This document shows, in pieces, positions 45,891 to 59,002 of a DNA stretch of 64,000 nucleotides (positions within the stretch are counted from its first letter, which is position 1; every line of letters starts with the position of its first letter). Made by a program: the position numbers and the translations under genes. A model generated the notes under the pieces. The model did no database searches. It was not told the DNA's origin and saw only the letters and a list, made by a program, of their open reading frames with translations. The stretch lies in sequence record NC_028999.1; one strand, 5' to 3'.

Positions 45891-45899
45891 TGATATACG
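45873..45899 (+). promoter_or_regulatory. Bipartite middle/late-type promoter
   Basis: AAGTTACTC-N12-TATACG. Confidence 0.7.
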
Positions 45900-46281
45900 T
45901 GGAAACATTTCCCAACTAGACCGAGGTTACAGCTGGACCATCTCCCCTAGGGCTTCCCGTCGCCTAAACTAGGGTGCCACCTGTGGCCTCACTTATCAAC
46001 CCTCTGCTTTCGGTGTGAGGGGTGGTCTCTCCGTATAGAGGAGAGACGCTATAGCGCAGCTCGCCAAGCTGCAAGCCGAAGCGTGATGTCTTACCTGGCT
46101 GGTATGACTAGCGAAGTTACGACGTGGTGTACTTTCCGAAGGCCAAAGGCGCCCCGGCCCATCAGAGTAGCGCTTTCGTTTTCCTTAGAGGCTGCCCTAA
46201 GCAGGCTCGCACTGGCCAGTGAGGAAAACGTCTGTATTCGAAACCAGCATAGCCCCGCCCCATCCGGGCGGGGTTTATGCC
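45894..46281 (+). ncRNA. Large structured non-coding RNA (~380 nt), family unknown
   Basis: Promoter motif upstream, terminator downstream, GC-rich, at least 10 hairpins, no ORF with an RBS. Confidence 0.7.
46247..46281 (+). terminator. GCATA-hairpin-TTTATGCC element
   Basis: GCCCCGCCC-CATCC-GGGCGGGGT. Confidence 0.85.
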
Positions 46282-53992: not shown

Positions 53993-54024
53993 AATAAAAG
54001 AGTAGCCGAAGCTACTCTCGTTAT
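53993..54024 (-). terminator. Terminator of the Asn/Tyr tRNA operon
   Basis: GAGTAGC-TTCG-GCTACTC-TTTTATT. Confidence 0.85.
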
Positions 54025-54025
54025 A

Positions 54026-54111
54026 TGGTGGTTGAAGGAAGGAATTGAACCTCTAGCCTAGGCGGGGGTGTTACAGACCCCTGACAGTAGCCATCTGTCT
54101 ATACATCAACC
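54026..54111 (-). tRNA. tRNA-Tyr(GTA), non-canonical
   Basis: GGGGT-CT-GTA-AC-ACCCC, variable arm, TTCAATT, ACCA end; atypical D-arm and acceptor. Confidence 0.8.
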
Positions 54112-54118
54112 GAAGGTG

Positions 54119-54152
54119 TGGAGACTCCATTTGACCGCTCTGGAACCTCTCC
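54119..54152 (-). pseudogene. Internally deleted tRNA (acceptor + D-arm only)
   Basis: GGAGAGG-TT-CCA-GAGCGGTCAAA-TGG-AG-TCTCCA. Confidence 0.65.
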
Positions 54153-54266
54153 GAATTTGGGCGGCATTTTTATTATACTGAGCTCCCCGCAGTCTCTCAG
54201 TCCCAGGCGGCCAGCTTTGGGCTGCTGACCTTACGCTCGGTGTGACTGTTGTTAACAGTCAGTGTT

Positions 54267-54342
54267 TGGCTCCGGAAACATGATTCGAACATGTGACCCA
54301 CAAGTTAACAGCTTGTTGCTCTACCAGCTGAGCTATTCCGGA
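54267..54342 (-). tRNA. tRNA-Asn(GTT)
   Basis: Canonical 76-nt cloverleaf; ACAAG-CT-GTT-AA-CTTGT; encoded CCA. Confidence 0.97.
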
Positions 54343-54469
54343 AGGAAATTTGACGGTTTGCTTTTTCAGAGTGGGGGAACACCGACAACCCTCTCACCAA
54401 TGCAAGCGTTTGCTCACCTGGCTTTGCGAGGACAGAATCGTTAGCCCAGTGGGCGATTGCATTTCCTCG

Positions 54470-54494
54470 TATACTATTACATACTGAGTAAGTT
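54470..54494 (-). promoter_or_regulatory. Bipartite promoter
   Basis: AACTTACTC-N12-TATACG. Confidence 0.7.
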
Positions 54495-54732
54495 ATTTAT
54501 TTTCATCGCAACGCCAACCGTACACTGTGTAGTTCCCATTATCAGAAACTTTCATGGCGGTAGCTGTGCGTTGAATCTCTACGTTCGGTAGATTCTTGAA
54601 CTTACTGTATTGTATTTCTAGGTGGTTGAGGCATTGGGGCATGGAGTCAAACTGAATGTAGGACTTCTCTACATTAGTAATACCAAACAACCCTACCTTA
54701 GCAACCAGTGCTAACATGGCTACCTTGACCAT
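54493..54732 (-). CDS. Small secreted-type protein
   Basis: Hydrophobic N-terminus; FDSMPQC and a C-terminal Cys. Confidence 0.7.
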   Translation of the reverse strand: MVKVAMLALVAKVGLFGITNVEKSYIQFDSMPQCLNHLEIQYSKFKNLPNVEIQRTATAMKVSDNGNYTVYGWRCDENK

Positions 54733-54739
54733 TGCTATC

Positions 54740-55033
54740 TTATTCCGTGTGCTTCAGATATTTCTCCAAAGCTTCGTGGGCTCGGTTGAAATACACCAGC
54801 GGAACGAACGAAACATTGGTGACTCGATGTTCGTCATGCAGTTCCCACTTGATAGCCTTTACTTGGCCATTGGGGAGAATGATATCAAGACCATTAGGGA
54901 ACAATACAATCCCTTCGTCAATCCTGATATGCTCGGGAGCAGCAGCTCCACCACGAAAAGCCGGGTTGAAAGTCAGGTTGTATAGTTTTTGAATAAGCGG
55001 CGTAATAATCGCCTGTTGCATTTGACTTTCCAT
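54740..55033 (-). CDS. Hypothetical protein
   Basis: TAATG coupling. Confidence 0.75.
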   Translation of the reverse strand: MESQMQQAIITPLIQKLYNLTFNPAFRGGAAAPEHIRIDEGIVLFPNGLDIILPNGQVKAIKWELHDEHRVTNVSFVPLVYFNRAHEALEKYLKHTE

Positions 55034-55380
55034 TATCTTCCCCTATTGTTGTTGTATGGGGTAACGGTTGCAACTATCGACATGCCCTTAAAGAAAGGAT
55101 GATAATCAAACGCAAGAATACCGGTTTCCTGTACCAGCCAGAAGGTAAGCCTGAGTGTATCTCCATTGTCCCCACGAATGGATATCTTACCTTCTGTACG
55201 GCTACGCTTGTCTACGTAACCGACTTGCACTTTGGCAGCGGGATAGATTTGACCGCGACTGTTCATCAACCGAACGTTAGAAATCCCAAACGAGTCGGTG
55301 ATCTCCGGCTGAACATTCAAGTCCTTGTAAATCGGATAATGGTTTTGTGCAATCGGAATCGTTACGTCTTGGTCAATCAT
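55033..55380 (-). CDS. Hypothetical protein
   Basis: AAGGA RBS. Confidence 0.8.
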   Translation of the reverse strand: MIDQDVTIPIAQNHYPIYKDLNVQPEITDSFGISNVRLMNSRGQIYPAAKVQVGYVDKRSRTEGKISIRGDNGDTLRLTFWLVQETGILAFDYHPFFKGMSIVATVTPYNNNRGR

Positions 55381-55500
55381 GCCATGCTTCCTTTAATAAT
55401 GGCTACGGTACCGGACCGAAACCGGTGACTGCTCGCAGTACCCCGCAGCGGATACCCAGTGTTGAATCCAAGGAGTATGCAGAGACTGTCGAGATCTCCA

Positions 55501-55525
55501 CATACCAATTCCCTTTGAGTAACTT
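55501..55525 (-). promoter_or_regulatory. Bipartite promoter
   Basis: AAGTTACTC-N12-TATG. Confidence 0.7.
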
Positions 55526-56032
55526 TTAGCTAAAGCGGATTACGAGGATGTCATTTCCAAAGGTGTCTGCTACCCATTGGTTGAATTCCTTATCAGTAAT
55601 CCCTCGAAGATTTAAATTGTAGGAAGCATTGTCTACAAGTAGATACTTTAGCCGTTTGGAGATATCTGAATTGAAGTCTTTTTGGATCGAGTATTGCTCG
55701 GGGTGACGAATGTACTTACGTAGCCTTTCAGTGATTAGATACGGTAATGTCAAGCCTGGACTCTTAGACTGAATACCCCGTTGAATTTTATCGTCCGTGA
55801 ATACAGCCAGGCATTCCCCTTGATGTCGAGTAGCGAATTCAACGAGTGCACTACTGCTACCACATTGACGACCTACAAAGAACCCTACGGTACGACATTC
55901 GCGAATCAACACGTGTGACGAGATATTACCTCGATGGTATTCCCAACCTTCATTGGTTTTTTGGATCAATGCATCCAGGATGTCCTGGTAATTTACAATA
56001 GTTCTTACGAACCGATTATAGCCATTGGCCAT
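55526..56032 (-). CDS. Hypothetical protein with degenerate P-loop-like motif
   Basis: GFFVGRQCGSSSAL; LLVDNAS. Confidence 0.75.
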   Translation of the reverse strand: MANGYNRFVRTIVNYQDILDALIQKTNEGWEYHRGNISSHVLIRECRTVGFFVGRQCGSSSALVEFATRHQGECLAVFTDDKIQRGIQSKSPGLTLPYLITERLRKYIRHPEQYSIQKDFNSDISKRLKYLLVDNASYNLNLRGITDKEFNQWVADTFGNDILVIRFS

Positions 56033-56055
56033 GATTATCTCCGGTATTACAATGC

Positions 56056-56322
56056 AACATAAAGTCCCGCCCTAGGGCAGGACCTGATGCCGACTTTGGA
56101 AAGGTCTCGTCGTCCCTTCCTCATCTACATGCGAACTTTGTTAGTGGATACAAATAACGAGATTCGCGCGTCTTTAGTCGCCCCAACGACTTCCCACAGT
56201 ACCATTAACTTTCCACTAATCGTCTCTGGTTTTCCGGGTGCTATAAGCATATCAAGTCAATGCAGTCTGCGGGGCTCGGGTGAGAGTGGCACCGCCTCGA
56301 TATGGTAGCAATTAGCTACATA
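56056..56322 (-). ncRNA. Candidate structured RNA (~260 nt)
   Basis: Promoter motif at 56319-56343, terminator at 56056-56091, multiple stems, no ORF with an RBS. Confidence 0.55.
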
Positions 56323-56343
56323 TCATCGCAACGCCAGTATATT
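56319..56343 (-). promoter_or_regulatory. Bipartite promoter
   Basis: AATATACTG-N12-TATG. Confidence 0.65.
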
Positions 56344-56347
56344 TTCA

Positions 56348-56704
56348 CTACCAGCGACTGGCACTGAATGGACGAGGATATTCAAGGCCAGCAATATCTT
56401 TACCGTTAACCACGACTACCCATTGATTCATGGTGGCGGTCTCACGGTAAACGATTGTTGGTTTAATCTCTTCACGAGTATACGTGGTTGCATACCATTC
56501 ACGCCAAACATCAATCAGACGGGCTTCCATGATTTCACGTAGTTGAGCCATGTTCCAGGTGCTATTTCCCGCTAGATCAGCCACTACCTCGCGAAGTCCA
56601 TCTAGGTATTTCTCATTTACATGGGGTTCGCCCCGGTTAGCCAATAGCTTCTCGTTGTTTGCATCCCGATCTGCTTGACTTATGAATATACGATTCGTAG
56701 TCAT
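56348..56704 (-). CDS. Hypothetical protein
   Basis: ATGA overlap. Confidence 0.8.
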   Translation of the reverse strand: MTTNRIFISQADRDANNEKLLANRGEPHVNEKYLDGLREVVADLAGNSTWNMAQLREIMEARLIDVWREWYATTYTREEIKPTIVYRETATMNQWVVVVNGKDIAGLEYPRPFSASRW

Positions 56705-57171
56705 TTTCTCAGTCCCTCAATCTCAGCACGTAAAAATGAACTAATCATACCTGCTGCTTTTCGAGTGGGCGAATCAAACATTTTGTCATTCCCGGCTACT
56801 GAGTCAGTAACTTTCTGAGCTAGTATCAGTCCAGGGATATAAGCACGATTACCATGAGTTGCGATGCGTGGTTGATCACGATAATACTCAACGTGATGAT
56901 AGCCACTAGGATGCACTACGATAACTTTGATGCTATCTCGTTCCCTAGTAATTTCGATCTTGAAATCGGACAATCCATCTTCAATCAAAGCAATCGTCAG
57001 CTTGCATTCCAGGACCTGGAAGAGTAGCTTGTCTGTGAGATGCGGTTGATTCTGAATCGTAATGGGCGCATTGAAATACAGCAAATCCCTGATACGGGCA
57101 CCGAATACTTTCTGTTCAGTGGTATCCAGATCTCTTTGCAGTTGTTCTTCGTTGTTTTGGCTCATTACCAT
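56701..57171 (-). CDS. Hypothetical protein
   Basis: AAGGA RBS. Confidence 0.8.
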   Translation of the reverse strand: MVMSQNNEEQLQRDLDTTEQKVFGARIRDLLYFNAPITIQNQPHLTDKLLFQVLECKLTIALIEDGLSDFKIEITRERDSIKVIVVHPSGYHHVEYYRDQPRIATHGNRAYIPGLILAQKVTDSVAGNDKMFDSPTRKAAGMISSFLRAEIEGLRK

Positions 57172-57300
57172 TGTCCTTTGTCTCTATGAATTTTGTCGTA
57201 TTTGATATAATAGTCTCTACCGCAGTGGGCACACCACTTGTAAAGACGGCCGCCTTGACATTGATTTCCAACTAGCTTGTGGCCCAATAGCCAGCACAGT

Positions 57301-57528
57301 TTACACCGTATTGAGTAGAGCTTCGACACGTTGCGTCCCCTGGCAAACCAGAACTGGTACTTCGATACCTTTCTCCTCGCAGTATTTTACGAGATCTTCA
57401 TGTGCCTTTCGCCACTGCTCCAGCAGCTGCCGATTCCGAATGCGATTAGCTTCCTTTTCTTCGGGAGTCAGTTCTGTTATATTACGAACACTGAGCTTGG
57501 GGATGGGATGGTATTCAGCAGATTTCAT
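57301..57528 (-). CDS. Hypothetical protein
   Basis: GGAG RBS; promoter motif at 57548-57573. Confidence 0.75.
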   Translation of the reverse strand: MKSAEYHPIPKLSVRNITELTPEEKEANRIRNRQLLEQWRKAHEDLVKYCEEKGIEVPVLVCQGTQRVEALLNTV

Positions 57529-57547
57529 ATTGGATCTCCGTTTTCTC

Positions 57548-57573
57548 TATAATGGAAAGGAAGCCAGTATATT
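57548..57573 (-). promoter_or_regulatory. Bipartite promoter
   Basis: AATATACTG-N13-TATA. Confidence 0.55.
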
Positions 57574-57590
57574 CTAAATATCTAGAGGCC

Positions 57591-57598
57591 TATATTAC
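57591..57598 (+). promoter_or_regulatory. Early promoter box
   Basis: AGAGGCC-TATATTAC-AA. Confidence 0.8.
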
Positions 57599-57649
57599 AA
57601 TTGTGATATCCAGAAGAGATATCATTCAATAACCTAAGAGGAAACTACA

Positions 57650-57844
57650 ATGAACGACAACATCATCGATTTCGAAGCTTACCGTAACAAGAACAACGGT
57701 AAGCGCAAGATGAAGAAGATCAAGAACGGCGTGTTCAAAGCCATCGACGAAACGCTGGATGATCGGGTCATAGAAAAAGTCCGTGACGTTACTATCTGCG
57801 CGGCTGTGGTTGGTATCGTCTGGTATTGCCTCACCCGTGATTGA
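57650..57844 (+). CDS. Early protein with C-terminal TM
   Basis: GAGGA RBS; own promoter and terminator. Confidence 0.85.
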   Translation: MNDNIIDFEAYRNKNNGKRKMKKIKNGVFKAIDETLDDRVIEKVRDVTICAAVVGIVWYCLTRD

Positions 57845-57850
57845 TTATTA

Positions 57851-57890
57851 GGGAGCCCTTCGGGGCTCCCTTCTATATCTTTTTTCTTTT
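57851..57890 (+). terminator. Intrinsic terminator
   Basis: GGGAGCCC-TTCG-GGGCTCCC followed by a T tract. Confidence 0.9.
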
Positions 57891-57900
57891 TGTCTGATAC

Positions 57901-57938
57901 GACATAAAGGAAGTAGCCACCGCTACTTCCTTTATTTA
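57901..57938 (-). terminator. Terminator after tRNA-Leu
   Basis: ATAAAGGAAGTAGC-GGTG-GCTACTTCCTTTAT-GTC. Confidence 0.85.
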
Positions 57939-57940
57939 AT

Positions 57941-58025
57941 TGGTACCCGAAGTGGGACTCGAACCCACACGTCACAAGGACAACTGATTTTAAGTCAGCA
58001 GCGGCTGCCTTTACGCCATTCGGGC
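57941..58025 (-). tRNA. tRNA-Leu(TAA)
   Basis: GCCCGAA acceptor, GCTGA-CT-TAA-AA-TCAGT, variable arm, GTGGG-TTCGAGT-CCCAC, ACCA. Confidence 0.95.
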
Positions 58026-58170
58026 ATATAGAGAACAGACGACAAGGCCATGTTGTAGCTTTCGCTAGTTATACGTATCTCATTCCCTAGGGAAGTGCCT
58101 AACGGCTTCTTTCGTACAACATTCATGGCTTTACAGACGTTGCTCAGCCCTCGTGAGCTGTTCTCTACAT
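58026..58170 (-). ncRNA. Stem-closed multi-branched RNA upstream of tRNA-Leu (~145 nt)
   Basis: 13-bp terminal stem with a G.U pair on the - strand; GCCATG/CATGGC; TAGC-GAAA-GCTA; GCC-GTTA-GGC; TTCCC-TA-GGGAA. Confidence 0.65.
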
Positions 58171-58193
58171 ATTAGATAACACTTGAGTATTAT
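58168..58193 (-). promoter_or_regulatory. Bipartite promoter
   Basis: ATAATACTC-N13-TATG. Confidence 0.65.
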
Positions 58194-58660
58194 CTTGGTC
58201 GCGGTCGATTCCCTGGACTCTGGCGATGAATCACCCGAGCAGGCATGTTAGGTACTTCGACAGCAGGCTTAAATAAGATCTTTGCAATCATGCGATCGAT
58301 TGCATCTTTCTGATCTTGAATAAACTCAAAGTGTTCTTCTGGTGGATCAGAGAACTTAGTGCGTGACTTACTTTGCCACTCTTCGTCTTTGGGATGGATA
58401 TATCCACCAATGACTCCGAATCGCAAGAAGTTGTCTGCTATGCCCAGACCTGGTTGACTTTCAAAACAGACCACTCGATCTGCACCACGTGAATGGCCGA
58501 TATAGAAGTCTGCTTGTGGTGGGCAAGTATCAGGCTTGCCCTTATCCATGATTACTTCTACACCTCGTTGGGTGAGGTAATCAACAATCGCAGCGTAGTA
58601 AGCCCGAGCTACATCGTTATTGATGAACAGGGGATTACCGGTGATTAGAACGGCCTTCAT
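58190..58660 (-). CDS. Minimal alpha/beta-hydrolase-like protein
   Basis: FYIGHSRGA nucleophile elbow (GxSxG). Confidence 0.65.
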   Translation of the reverse strand: MKAVLITGNPLFINNDVARAYYAAIVDYLTQRGVEVIMDKGKPDTCPPQADFYIGHSRGADRVVCFESQPGLGIADNFLRFGVIGGYIHPKDEEWQSKSRTKFSDPPEEHFEFIQDQKDAIDRMIAKILFKPAVEVPNMPARVIHRQSPGNRPRPR

Positions 58661-58690
58661 GGCGAAGCCTCCGAGTGAATCTCATAAGAT

Positions 58691-58912
58691 TCAGGCTTCG
58701 ATAGGCTCAACTACACGACGATGTTGTACAGTACCCCTGTCTGTAACTACCGTGATGGTGTTCTGGTTGTCAATAGCTACTACCTTCACCCCTTTAATAG
58801 TGGTGTGAATAGCTGCTGCCATCTCCGCTTTGGAGTAACGCCAATTGGCCATCAGGATTGCCGATACCTGGGTTTGAAGTTGTTTCAGTTCATTGATGTT
58901 TACAGACTGCAT
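58691..58912 (-). CDS. Hypothetical protein
   Basis: AAGGA RBS. Confidence 0.8.
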   Translation of the reverse strand: MQSVNINELKQLQTQVSAILMANWRYSKAEMAAAIHTTIKGVKVVAIDNQNTITVVTDRGTVQHRRVVEPIEA

Positions 58913-58965
58913 GGTTGTTTCCTTTTAGAGGGGATTTCATGAGATTAAACGTATCAGTAAAATAC

Positions 58966-59002
58966 AACATAAAGCCCCTCCCGAAGGAGGGGCTGTTATG
59001 CC
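58966..59002 (-). terminator. GGCATAA-hairpin-TTTATGTT element
   Basis: AGCCCCTCC-TTCG-GGAGGGGCT on the - strand. Confidence 0.85.

Follow-up and report, generated by a model that had tools for sequence, protein, structure and literature searches.

The gap upstream of gp367 in Pseudomonas jumbo phage PhiPA3 makes an apparently abundant non-coding RNA, a probable leader, that corresponds to a phiKZ ncRNA locus but has another body

The 5'UTR-derived RNA described for phiKZ gp297 and the corresponding gap in PhiPA3

In phage phiKZ, Gerovac et al. (2021) detected an abundant RNA of ~100 nt from the gap between PHIKZ298 and PHIKZ297, which was found in light Grad-seq fractions, did not co-sediment with ribosomes and was confirmed by Northern blotting; the same probe also showed a longer, mRNA-like species, and the RNA was taken as a processed 3'UTR of PHIKZ298 ('3'UTR_PHIKZ298') (PMC8545117). 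In the re-annotation by Putzeys et al. (2024), the RNA spans 270595-270485 on the minus strand, has a start of its own mapped by ONT-cappable-seq and derives from the 5'UTR of PHIKZ297 (PMC10914365). In phiKZ, 17 candidate ncRNAs derived from 5'UTRs by premature termination have been listed (PMC10914365), and sRNA005 of phage 201phi2-1 is located upstream of a tail gene of the gp182 family (PMC11512511). A review of 2026 says merely that phiKZ expresses non-coding RNAs. The signals that delimit such transcripts have been described as well: a conserved motif is present at 61 phiKZ terminators (PMC10914365), and motif A/B has been reported in 201phi2-1 (PMC11512511). According to the published descriptions, phiKZ late promoters carry TATG with G as +1, and phiKZ middle promoters carry an A-rich run followed by TACT about 22 nt upstream.

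The window analysed here is a 64,000-nt stretch of the genome of Pseudomonas jumbo phage PhiPA3 (NC_028999, genome positions 245209-309208); positions below are those of the window. The RNA is encoded in a 315-nt gap between gp369 (56348-56704) and gp367, both on the minus strand, in which GenBank annotates a single feature, the plus-strand orphan ORF gp368. A real non-coding RNA of about 262 nt, to all appearances abundant, is transcribed from the minus strand of this gap (Table 1). It is not a new kind of element but represents in PhiPA3, with another body, the leader/ncRNA locus published for phiKZ.

The two RNAs lie on the same strand directly upstream of a gp297-family gene, and both begin with a 5'-terminal hairpin; the promoter, the PB element, the last hairpin and the leader CAUUGUAAUA-GGAG are homologous. 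They differ in the body. The phiKZ RNA, about 111 nt long, ends at 270485, immediately downstream of an internal hairpin followed by UUAUAUU (T1); in PhiPA3, which has neither T1 nor that body, an unrelated core of some 140 nt takes their place, giving about 262 nt to the terminator T2. Because PhiPA3 has no T1, its RNA should run to T2, and the library contigs agree with this. The upstream neighbour is different, too. The other 5'UTR-derived candidates of giant phages are likewise short terminated transcripts between a promoter and a coding sequence, and their position, like that of the PhiPA3 RNA, is conserved across genera; they belong to other loci and have other sequences, the RNA of the gp182 family being located upstream of gp214 in PhiPA3.

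Table 1. Features of the gp369-gp367 gap and its surroundings in the PhiPA3 window
Feature	Position	Strand	Remarks
Promoter	56319..56346	-	predicted; A-rich run and TACT (56339-56336, about -18), TATACTGGC, TATG 56322-56319
RNA	56055..56319	-	about 262-265 nt, G56319 to terminator U-tract; library contigs
P1, 5'-terminal hairpin starting at +1	56305..56319	-	pair probability 0.97-0.99
PhiPA3-specific core	56164..56304	-	small hairpin 56191-56176 and predicted helix 56262-56254/56211-56203; no homolog
Conserved single-stranded block	56140..56163	-	AUCUCGUU-AUUUGUA-UCCACUAAC; alignment
PB	56092..56125	-	3-bp outer helix GAU/GUC and 7-bp inner helix GGAAGGG/CCUUUCC, loop ACGACGAGA; p = 0.99
T2, predicted family intrinsic terminator	56055..56091	-	GC-rich hairpin of 10 bp (56084-56063) with a GGCAU extension, followed by UUUAUGUUG
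Leader box, GGAG and start codon of gp367	56030..56054	-	CAUUGUAAUA 56054-56045; GGAG 56041-56038; start codon 56032-56030
gp367	55526..56032	-	downstream gene; homolog of phiKZ gp297; phrog_2586, function unknown
gp368	56087..56308	+	GenBank 'hypothetical protein' of 73 aa (YP_009217447); antisense to the RNA; probably not a gene
41-aa ORF	56125..56250	-	inside the RNA, in the non-conserved core; probably not translated
25-aa ORF	56047..56124	-	overlaps PB and T2

As to the downstream gene, the structure predicted for gp367 (Atlas) is similar to one RecA/P-loop domain of DEAD/ResIII helicases (TM 0.56-0.61), and GRQCGSS stands at the expected position of Walker A, without its lysine; we note both as leads only.

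Ends, strand and coding potential of the PhiPA3 RNA

Four public RNA libraries from two studies were compared with positions 54000-59000, X3 and X4 being contig sets of small RNA-seq and X1 and X2 being of the immunoprecipitation type. Neither exact ends nor levels nor strand can be read directly from contigs. Within this interval, the sole contig of X3 covered 56084-56323 and the sole contig of X4 covered 56060-56282; together they span about the distance from the predicted start to the terminator, and the confinement of contigs to the RNA in the libraries of two studies fits an abundant species. Along the RNA, X1 showed high word depth only over 56171-56337, in the 5' half. Because many neighbouring bins were empty in all four runs, the coverage at the locus did not come from genomic or contaminating DNA. 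A contig of X2 (55892-56340) spanned both T2 and the promoter, and some read-through transcripts therefore exist. The ChmC eCLIP study on PhiPA3, which names its data set as GSE243675 and which we guess to be one of the two sources, confined its analysis to annotated genes and stated that RNA-seq analysis of start sites does not exist for this phage.

Other signals were seen in the same interval. A contig of X1 joined the 5' end of tRNA-Leu (57941-58025, minus strand) at 58025 back to its 3' end at 57941, which is most simply explained as a circular or concatenated form arising as a ligation artefact of the immunoprecipitation library. Very high word depth was found over 58008-58174 (7117 in X2), over an RNA abutting tRNA-Leu, and over 55169-55335 (2492 in X1), inside the coding sequence of gp366, the latter having no obvious explanation.

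The orientation of adapters is read by the logic of the single-end eCLIP library design. At 56203, an adapter was joined with the orientation that adapters have where minus-strand tRNAs end 3' (54267 and 58029), and the random-mer-side adapter was found at 56340. The RNA is therefore on the minus strand, as indicated by adapter orientation calibrated with tRNAs in the libraries of one study. This bears directly on gp368, which could be a real gene whose mRNA gave rise to the contigs: its frame is open, AGGA precedes the ATG by 4 nt, and the contig 56084-56323 nearly coincides with the ORF. The adapters, however, point to the opposite strand, neither a plus-strand promoter nor a terminator family motif accompanies the ORF, and the AGGA is the complement of the terminator stem. 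Furthermore, gp368 had no match in Pfam or PHROG and no tblastn match at E<=1 among 50,697 phage records, was a singleton among 5.8 billion protein clusters and has no annotated counterpart in the gap of phiKZ; the indels in the alignment of the gaps are not multiples of three. The chance that gp368 accounts for the contigs is close to negligible, and the gene is probably spurious, a mis-annotation.

The two ORFs that had been listed on the sequence alone, the 41-aa ORF on the minus strand and the 73-aa ORF at 56087-56308 on the plus strand, are both present, and neither has any relative. The RNA could still serve as mRNA for a small protein encoded on the minus strand, by the 41-aa ORF or by the 25-aa ORF, the latter beginning with MRKG in both PhiPA3 and phiKZ and, in PhiPA3 and U5, stopping within the conserved leader box. 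Yet neither ORF is preceded by a Shine-Dalgarno sequence; the 41-aa ORF, for which no relative was found, lies in the non-conserved core, and the shorter one is reduced to 16 codons in phiKZ and 4 codons in fnug and OMKO1. Per-sequence folds showed that substitutions in the region of the 25-aa ORF keep base pairs rather than codons, and the phiKZ RNA stays away from ribosomes. A coding function is highly improbable. What the sequence-only reading had proposed, a non-coding transcription unit on the minus strand with a promoter and a family terminator, was supported by the contig ends, by ORFs lacking relatives and by the mapped start in phiKZ.

The promoter-like arrangement AATATACTG-N12-TATG is present on the minus strand at 56343-56319 as originally described, and G56319 in TATG is the predicted transcription start. 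In sequence, 56346-56319 fits both the middle (A-rich run and TACT, 18-22 nt upstream) and the late (TATG) promoters described in phiKZ. This block is shared by phiKZ and five relatives in our alignment, and the phiKZ start mapped at 270595 differs by 1 nt from the corresponding G in the conserved TATG. The X3 contig end at 56323 bounds the PhiPA3 start, 4 nt upstream of the predicted G. The promoter block occurs once more, as AATATACTGGC-N11-TATAG (57545-57571, minus strand), upstream of gp371 (start codon 57528); this resemblance points to a small class of promoters to which that of the leader RNA would also belong. A census of the promoter using simple regular expressions returned too few matches to define a class, the site at 57571 being the sole second TATACTGGC-like site.

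Alternatively, the RNA might lack its own promoter and be cut from the 3'UTR of the gp370-gp369 operon, an origin initially proposed for the phiKZ RNA with respect to gp298. No terminator is found between the gp369 stop (56348) and the RNA, and the X2 contig crosses the predicted start as far as 56340. Against processing, the promoter block is conserved even though the upstream gene in phiKZ is unrelated, the phiKZ start is a primary 5' end according to cap enrichment (PMC10914365), and neither X3 nor X4 has a contig upstream of 56323 within 54000-59000. We consider this origin very unlikely.

Folding of the RNA and its conservation among relatives

Several of the stems read from the sequence were recovered in the thermodynamic ensemble: the 5' hairpin GUAGC-UAAUU-GCUAC (56319-56305, pair probability 0.97-0.99), the hairpin AGUCG-UUGGGG-CGACU (56191-56176, p about 0.78), the stem GGAAGG(G)/CCUUUCC (56118-56096, p 0.99) and the family terminator, with its hairpin 56084-56063 followed by UUUAUGUUG (p 1.0). 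The two long-range domains that had been drawn with them, closed by GGUGC/GCACC and by UUAGUGGA/UCCACUAA, each had a closing probability of about 0; enforcing both closures raised the energy from -86.8 to -73.7 kcal/mol, a penalty of 13 kcal/mol, and by our own estimate one perfect 8-bp complement per 265 nt is about what chance provides. The whole 265-nt RNA was more stable than shuffled sequences (z = -2.31; 4 of 200 shuffles equally good), but its interior without the two end hairpins was not better than chance (z = -0.01), and the plus strand gave z = -0.79. The 'large, multi-stem, stand-alone ncRNA' proposed earlier holds as an ncRNA but was overstated as a multi-stem one, given the interior score and the two unsupported domains.

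Within the core, the predicted helix 56262-56254/56211-56203 consists of 9 bp and its end coincides with the adapter-joined 3' end of RNA at 56203, which fits nuclease trimming of single-stranded RNA. Downstream of the core, PhiPA3, U5, fnug and OMKO1 share the 24-nt block AUCUCGUU..UUUGUA.CCACUA, of which phiKZ, SL2 and Churi have a degenerate form. CUCGU in this block could pair with ACGAG in the loop of the PB hairpin, forming a putative pseudoknot without covariation. Pairing of the block with the Shine-Dalgarno sequence of gp367 was considered and dropped, as it would involve 5 bp only and is not kept in fnug.

Rfam covariance models gave no match at the gathering score; at E up to 10, the sole match was isrJ with 13.8 bits, a chance hit. 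A T-box-like, tRNA-sensing interpretation of GGUGGUA-type motifs was abandoned, there being no model match. The covariance scan suggested for this RNA thus returned no family; per-sequence folds of the relatives showed helices kept through compensatory changes, as detailed below. A search of the PhiPA3 genome for paralogs of the RNA was negative; one match of 14 nt, at 54516, falls within the gp364 coding sequence and was dismissed as chance. The leader RNA has no sequence similarity with the PhiPA3 RNA at 45894-46281, and the two are therefore not paralogs.

With blastn against 50,697 phage records, the gap retrieved PhiPA3 itself only. The homology with phiKZ emerged only via the flanking protein, gp367 being 63% identical to phiKZ gp297; the gaps upstream of the two genes (315 nt in PhiPA3, 284 nt in phiKZ) can be aligned. 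We aligned the gaps of seven phages, PhiPA3, phiKZ, SL2, Churi, U5, fnug and OMKO1; helices were compared using per-sequence folds, and the PB and T2 columns of the MAFFT alignment are not structurally aligned. The features in common are TATACTGGC followed after about 10 nt by TATG, the position of the 5' hairpin, PB, the last hairpin and the leader box. The 5'-terminal hairpin occupies the same position in all six phiKZ-like relatives with a lineage-specific sequence, and two of its pairs are changed on both sides within Phikzvirus. PB folds alike in 7 of the 7 sequences, with a 3-bp outer helix and a 7-8-bp hairpin; an outer A-U pair is replaced by G-C in fnug and OMKO1, the inner helix is lineage-specific yet paired, and ACGAG is present in the loops of PhiPA3, U5 and fnug. 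Similarly, the last hairpin is entirely different in sequence from lineage to lineage but always paired. The 10-nt leader box CAUUGUAAUA is invariant in all seven phages, whereas its flanks diverge.

The core of PhiPA3 (about 56304-56164, ~140 nt) has no counterpart in the relatives. Conversely, a covariance model of the 111-nt phiKZ body (R1, built from six Phikzvirus sequences) scored 6.1 bits (E 1.4) at the PhiPA3 locus and found nothing elsewhere in the genome. The phiKZ body is absent from PhiPA3, and the accumulating RNA species therefore share their flanks only. The neighbouring genes behave differently as well: the upstream one varies (gp298 in phiKZ, gp369 in PhiPA3), whereas the downstream gp297 homolog is constant. 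The RNA stays with the gp297 homolog while the upstream gene is unrelated, which independently supports the interpretation of the RNA as 5'UTR-derived.

Between phiKZ and fnug, identity is 84.8% in the 111-nt body, 70.4% in the gp297 coding sequence and 57% in the rest of the leader; the better conservation of the small-RNA body than of the coding sequence is a hint of a function of the RNA itself. In the same pair of phages, identity reaches 95.5% over the last 600 nt of gp298, and a recombination boundary is placed by this comparison of sequences at or near the RNA promoter. As for gp297, three roughly equidistant alleles exist (phiKZ, the fnug group and PhiPA3).

In phage PA1C (MK599315, about 297,160-296,960), a single deletion extends from the first RNA hairpin into gp297 and removes about three quarters of the gene, leaving the last 40 or so codons; the promoter is mutated, with TATCTAACA for TATACTGGC and TATC for TATG. 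Removed by one deletion, the RNA and gp297 disappeared jointly and are dispensable in that phage. In Psa21, Phabio and 201phi2-1, the gaps upstream of the gp297 homologs contain tRNAs and/or the family terminator and no PB-like module. A scan for the leader-box pattern gave one phiKZ-like PA7 contig in IMG/VR and nothing in metagenome contigs; the search for related loci with gp367 returned the same single PA7 contig.

Predicted termination upstream of gp367 and possible roles of the RNA

T2 is an ordinary predicted member of the phiKZ-family intrinsic terminators, which likewise consist of a GC-rich hairpin with a TTTATG tail and a partly complementary GGCAU extension. Among the 120 TTTATG sites of the PhiPA3 genome, 56 are preceded by a hairpin of <= -10 kcal/mol, as compared with 8% of random positions, and T2 is one of the 56 (-15.4 kcal/mol in the genome census, -21.6 kcal/mol including the extension). 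Family sites in the window include 58973, 56063, 49277 and 48852 on the minus strand and 46274, 36602 and 35491 on the plus strand. An ORF of >=50 codons preceded by a Shine-Dalgarno sequence begins within 120 nt downstream on the same strand at 25 of the 56 sites, the corresponding figures being 21% for random positions and 23% for the other side of these hairpins. From terminator to ORF, the distances cluster at 25-28 nt, that of gp367 being 26. TTTATG contains TATG, the start motif of the phage non-virion RNA polymerase. PhiPA3 terminators may accordingly double as restart points for the next gene, and TATG in the tail of T2 (G56058) may restart transcription. In U5, fnug and OMKO1, the last hairpin is followed by TATAC instead of TATG, which counts against restart as a general rule; gp297 must there depend on the upstream promoter.

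It is somewhat more probable than not, in our judgement, that the RNA is the terminated 5' leader of the gp367/gp297 unit, and hence the positional and partly sequence counterpart of the published phiKZ RNA. A promoter of the phiKZ type would fire at G56319, and most polymerases would stop at T2, 26 nt upstream of the start codon of gp367. The 5'-terminal hairpin and the 3' terminator hairpin would protect both ends, allowing the RNA to accumulate, and gp367 would be expressed via read-through, as seen in X2, and/or via restart at TATG in the terminator tail. The conserved part made up of PB, T2 and the leader box may act in cis on the expression of gp367, with the lineage-specific core as a spacer or an accessory part. 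In this respect, the term 'stand-alone' used in the sequence-only reading was overstated: the RNA does have promoter and terminator motifs of its own, but the phiKZ locus is described as derived from the 5'UTR of gp297, and the PhiPA3 RNA may therefore represent a terminated leader and not a gene in its own right.

If the TATG of the terminator tail is the real promoter of gp367, the RNA is an independent unit, as first proposed. In the main rival reading, it is an independent, trans-acting regulatory RNA or a sponge for an RNA-binding protein, with gp367 transcribed separately from that TATG. The strength of the terminator speaks for this, as do the recurrence in the genome of the arrangement hairpin-TTTATG-about 26 nt-ATG, the presence of the phiKZ RNA in light fractions away from ribosomes (PMC8545117), the conservation of the small-RNA body of Phikzvirus above that of the neighbouring coding sequence, and the word depth over the 5' half in a library of the immunoprecipitation type. 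On the other hand, no core is conserved between PhiPA3 and phiKZ, the interior structure is no better than chance, no extended complementarity exists elsewhere in the PhiPA3 genome, three relatives have no TATG after the last hairpin, and PA1C dispenses with the RNA. We regard an independent trans-acting RNA as possible but rather unlikely; in particular, the lack of a core common to PhiPA3 and phiKZ, together with the unremarkable folding of the PhiPA3 core, argues against a single conserved trans-acting fold.

A conserved frame might nevertheless carry exchangeable cores. We consider it doubtful that these are modular trans-acting RNAs in which a lineage-specific core binds an RNA-binding protein or a target RNA. 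If that were true, the frame would comprise the promoter, the 5' hairpin, PB and the last hairpin, the core would be the 111-nt body in Phikzvirus and the 140-nt one in PhiPA3, and the leader position would be a delivery vehicle only; the gp297-leader RNAs of nucleus-forming Pseudomonas phages would then be bound by a phage or host protein during infection.

The comparison has consequences for both phages. The annotation of PhiPA3 is corrected, in that a minus-strand RNA feature should probably replace gp368; this is relevant wherever this model of nucleus-forming phages is analysed gene by gene, as in the ChmC eCLIP study with its annotated genes. Few ncRNAs of phiKZ have been observed in experiments, and for this one the first comparison across genera is now provided: the RNA travels with gp297, not with gp298, and conservation covers its promoter, its 5' hairpin and its 3' module while its body is replaceable, which narrows the search for its function.
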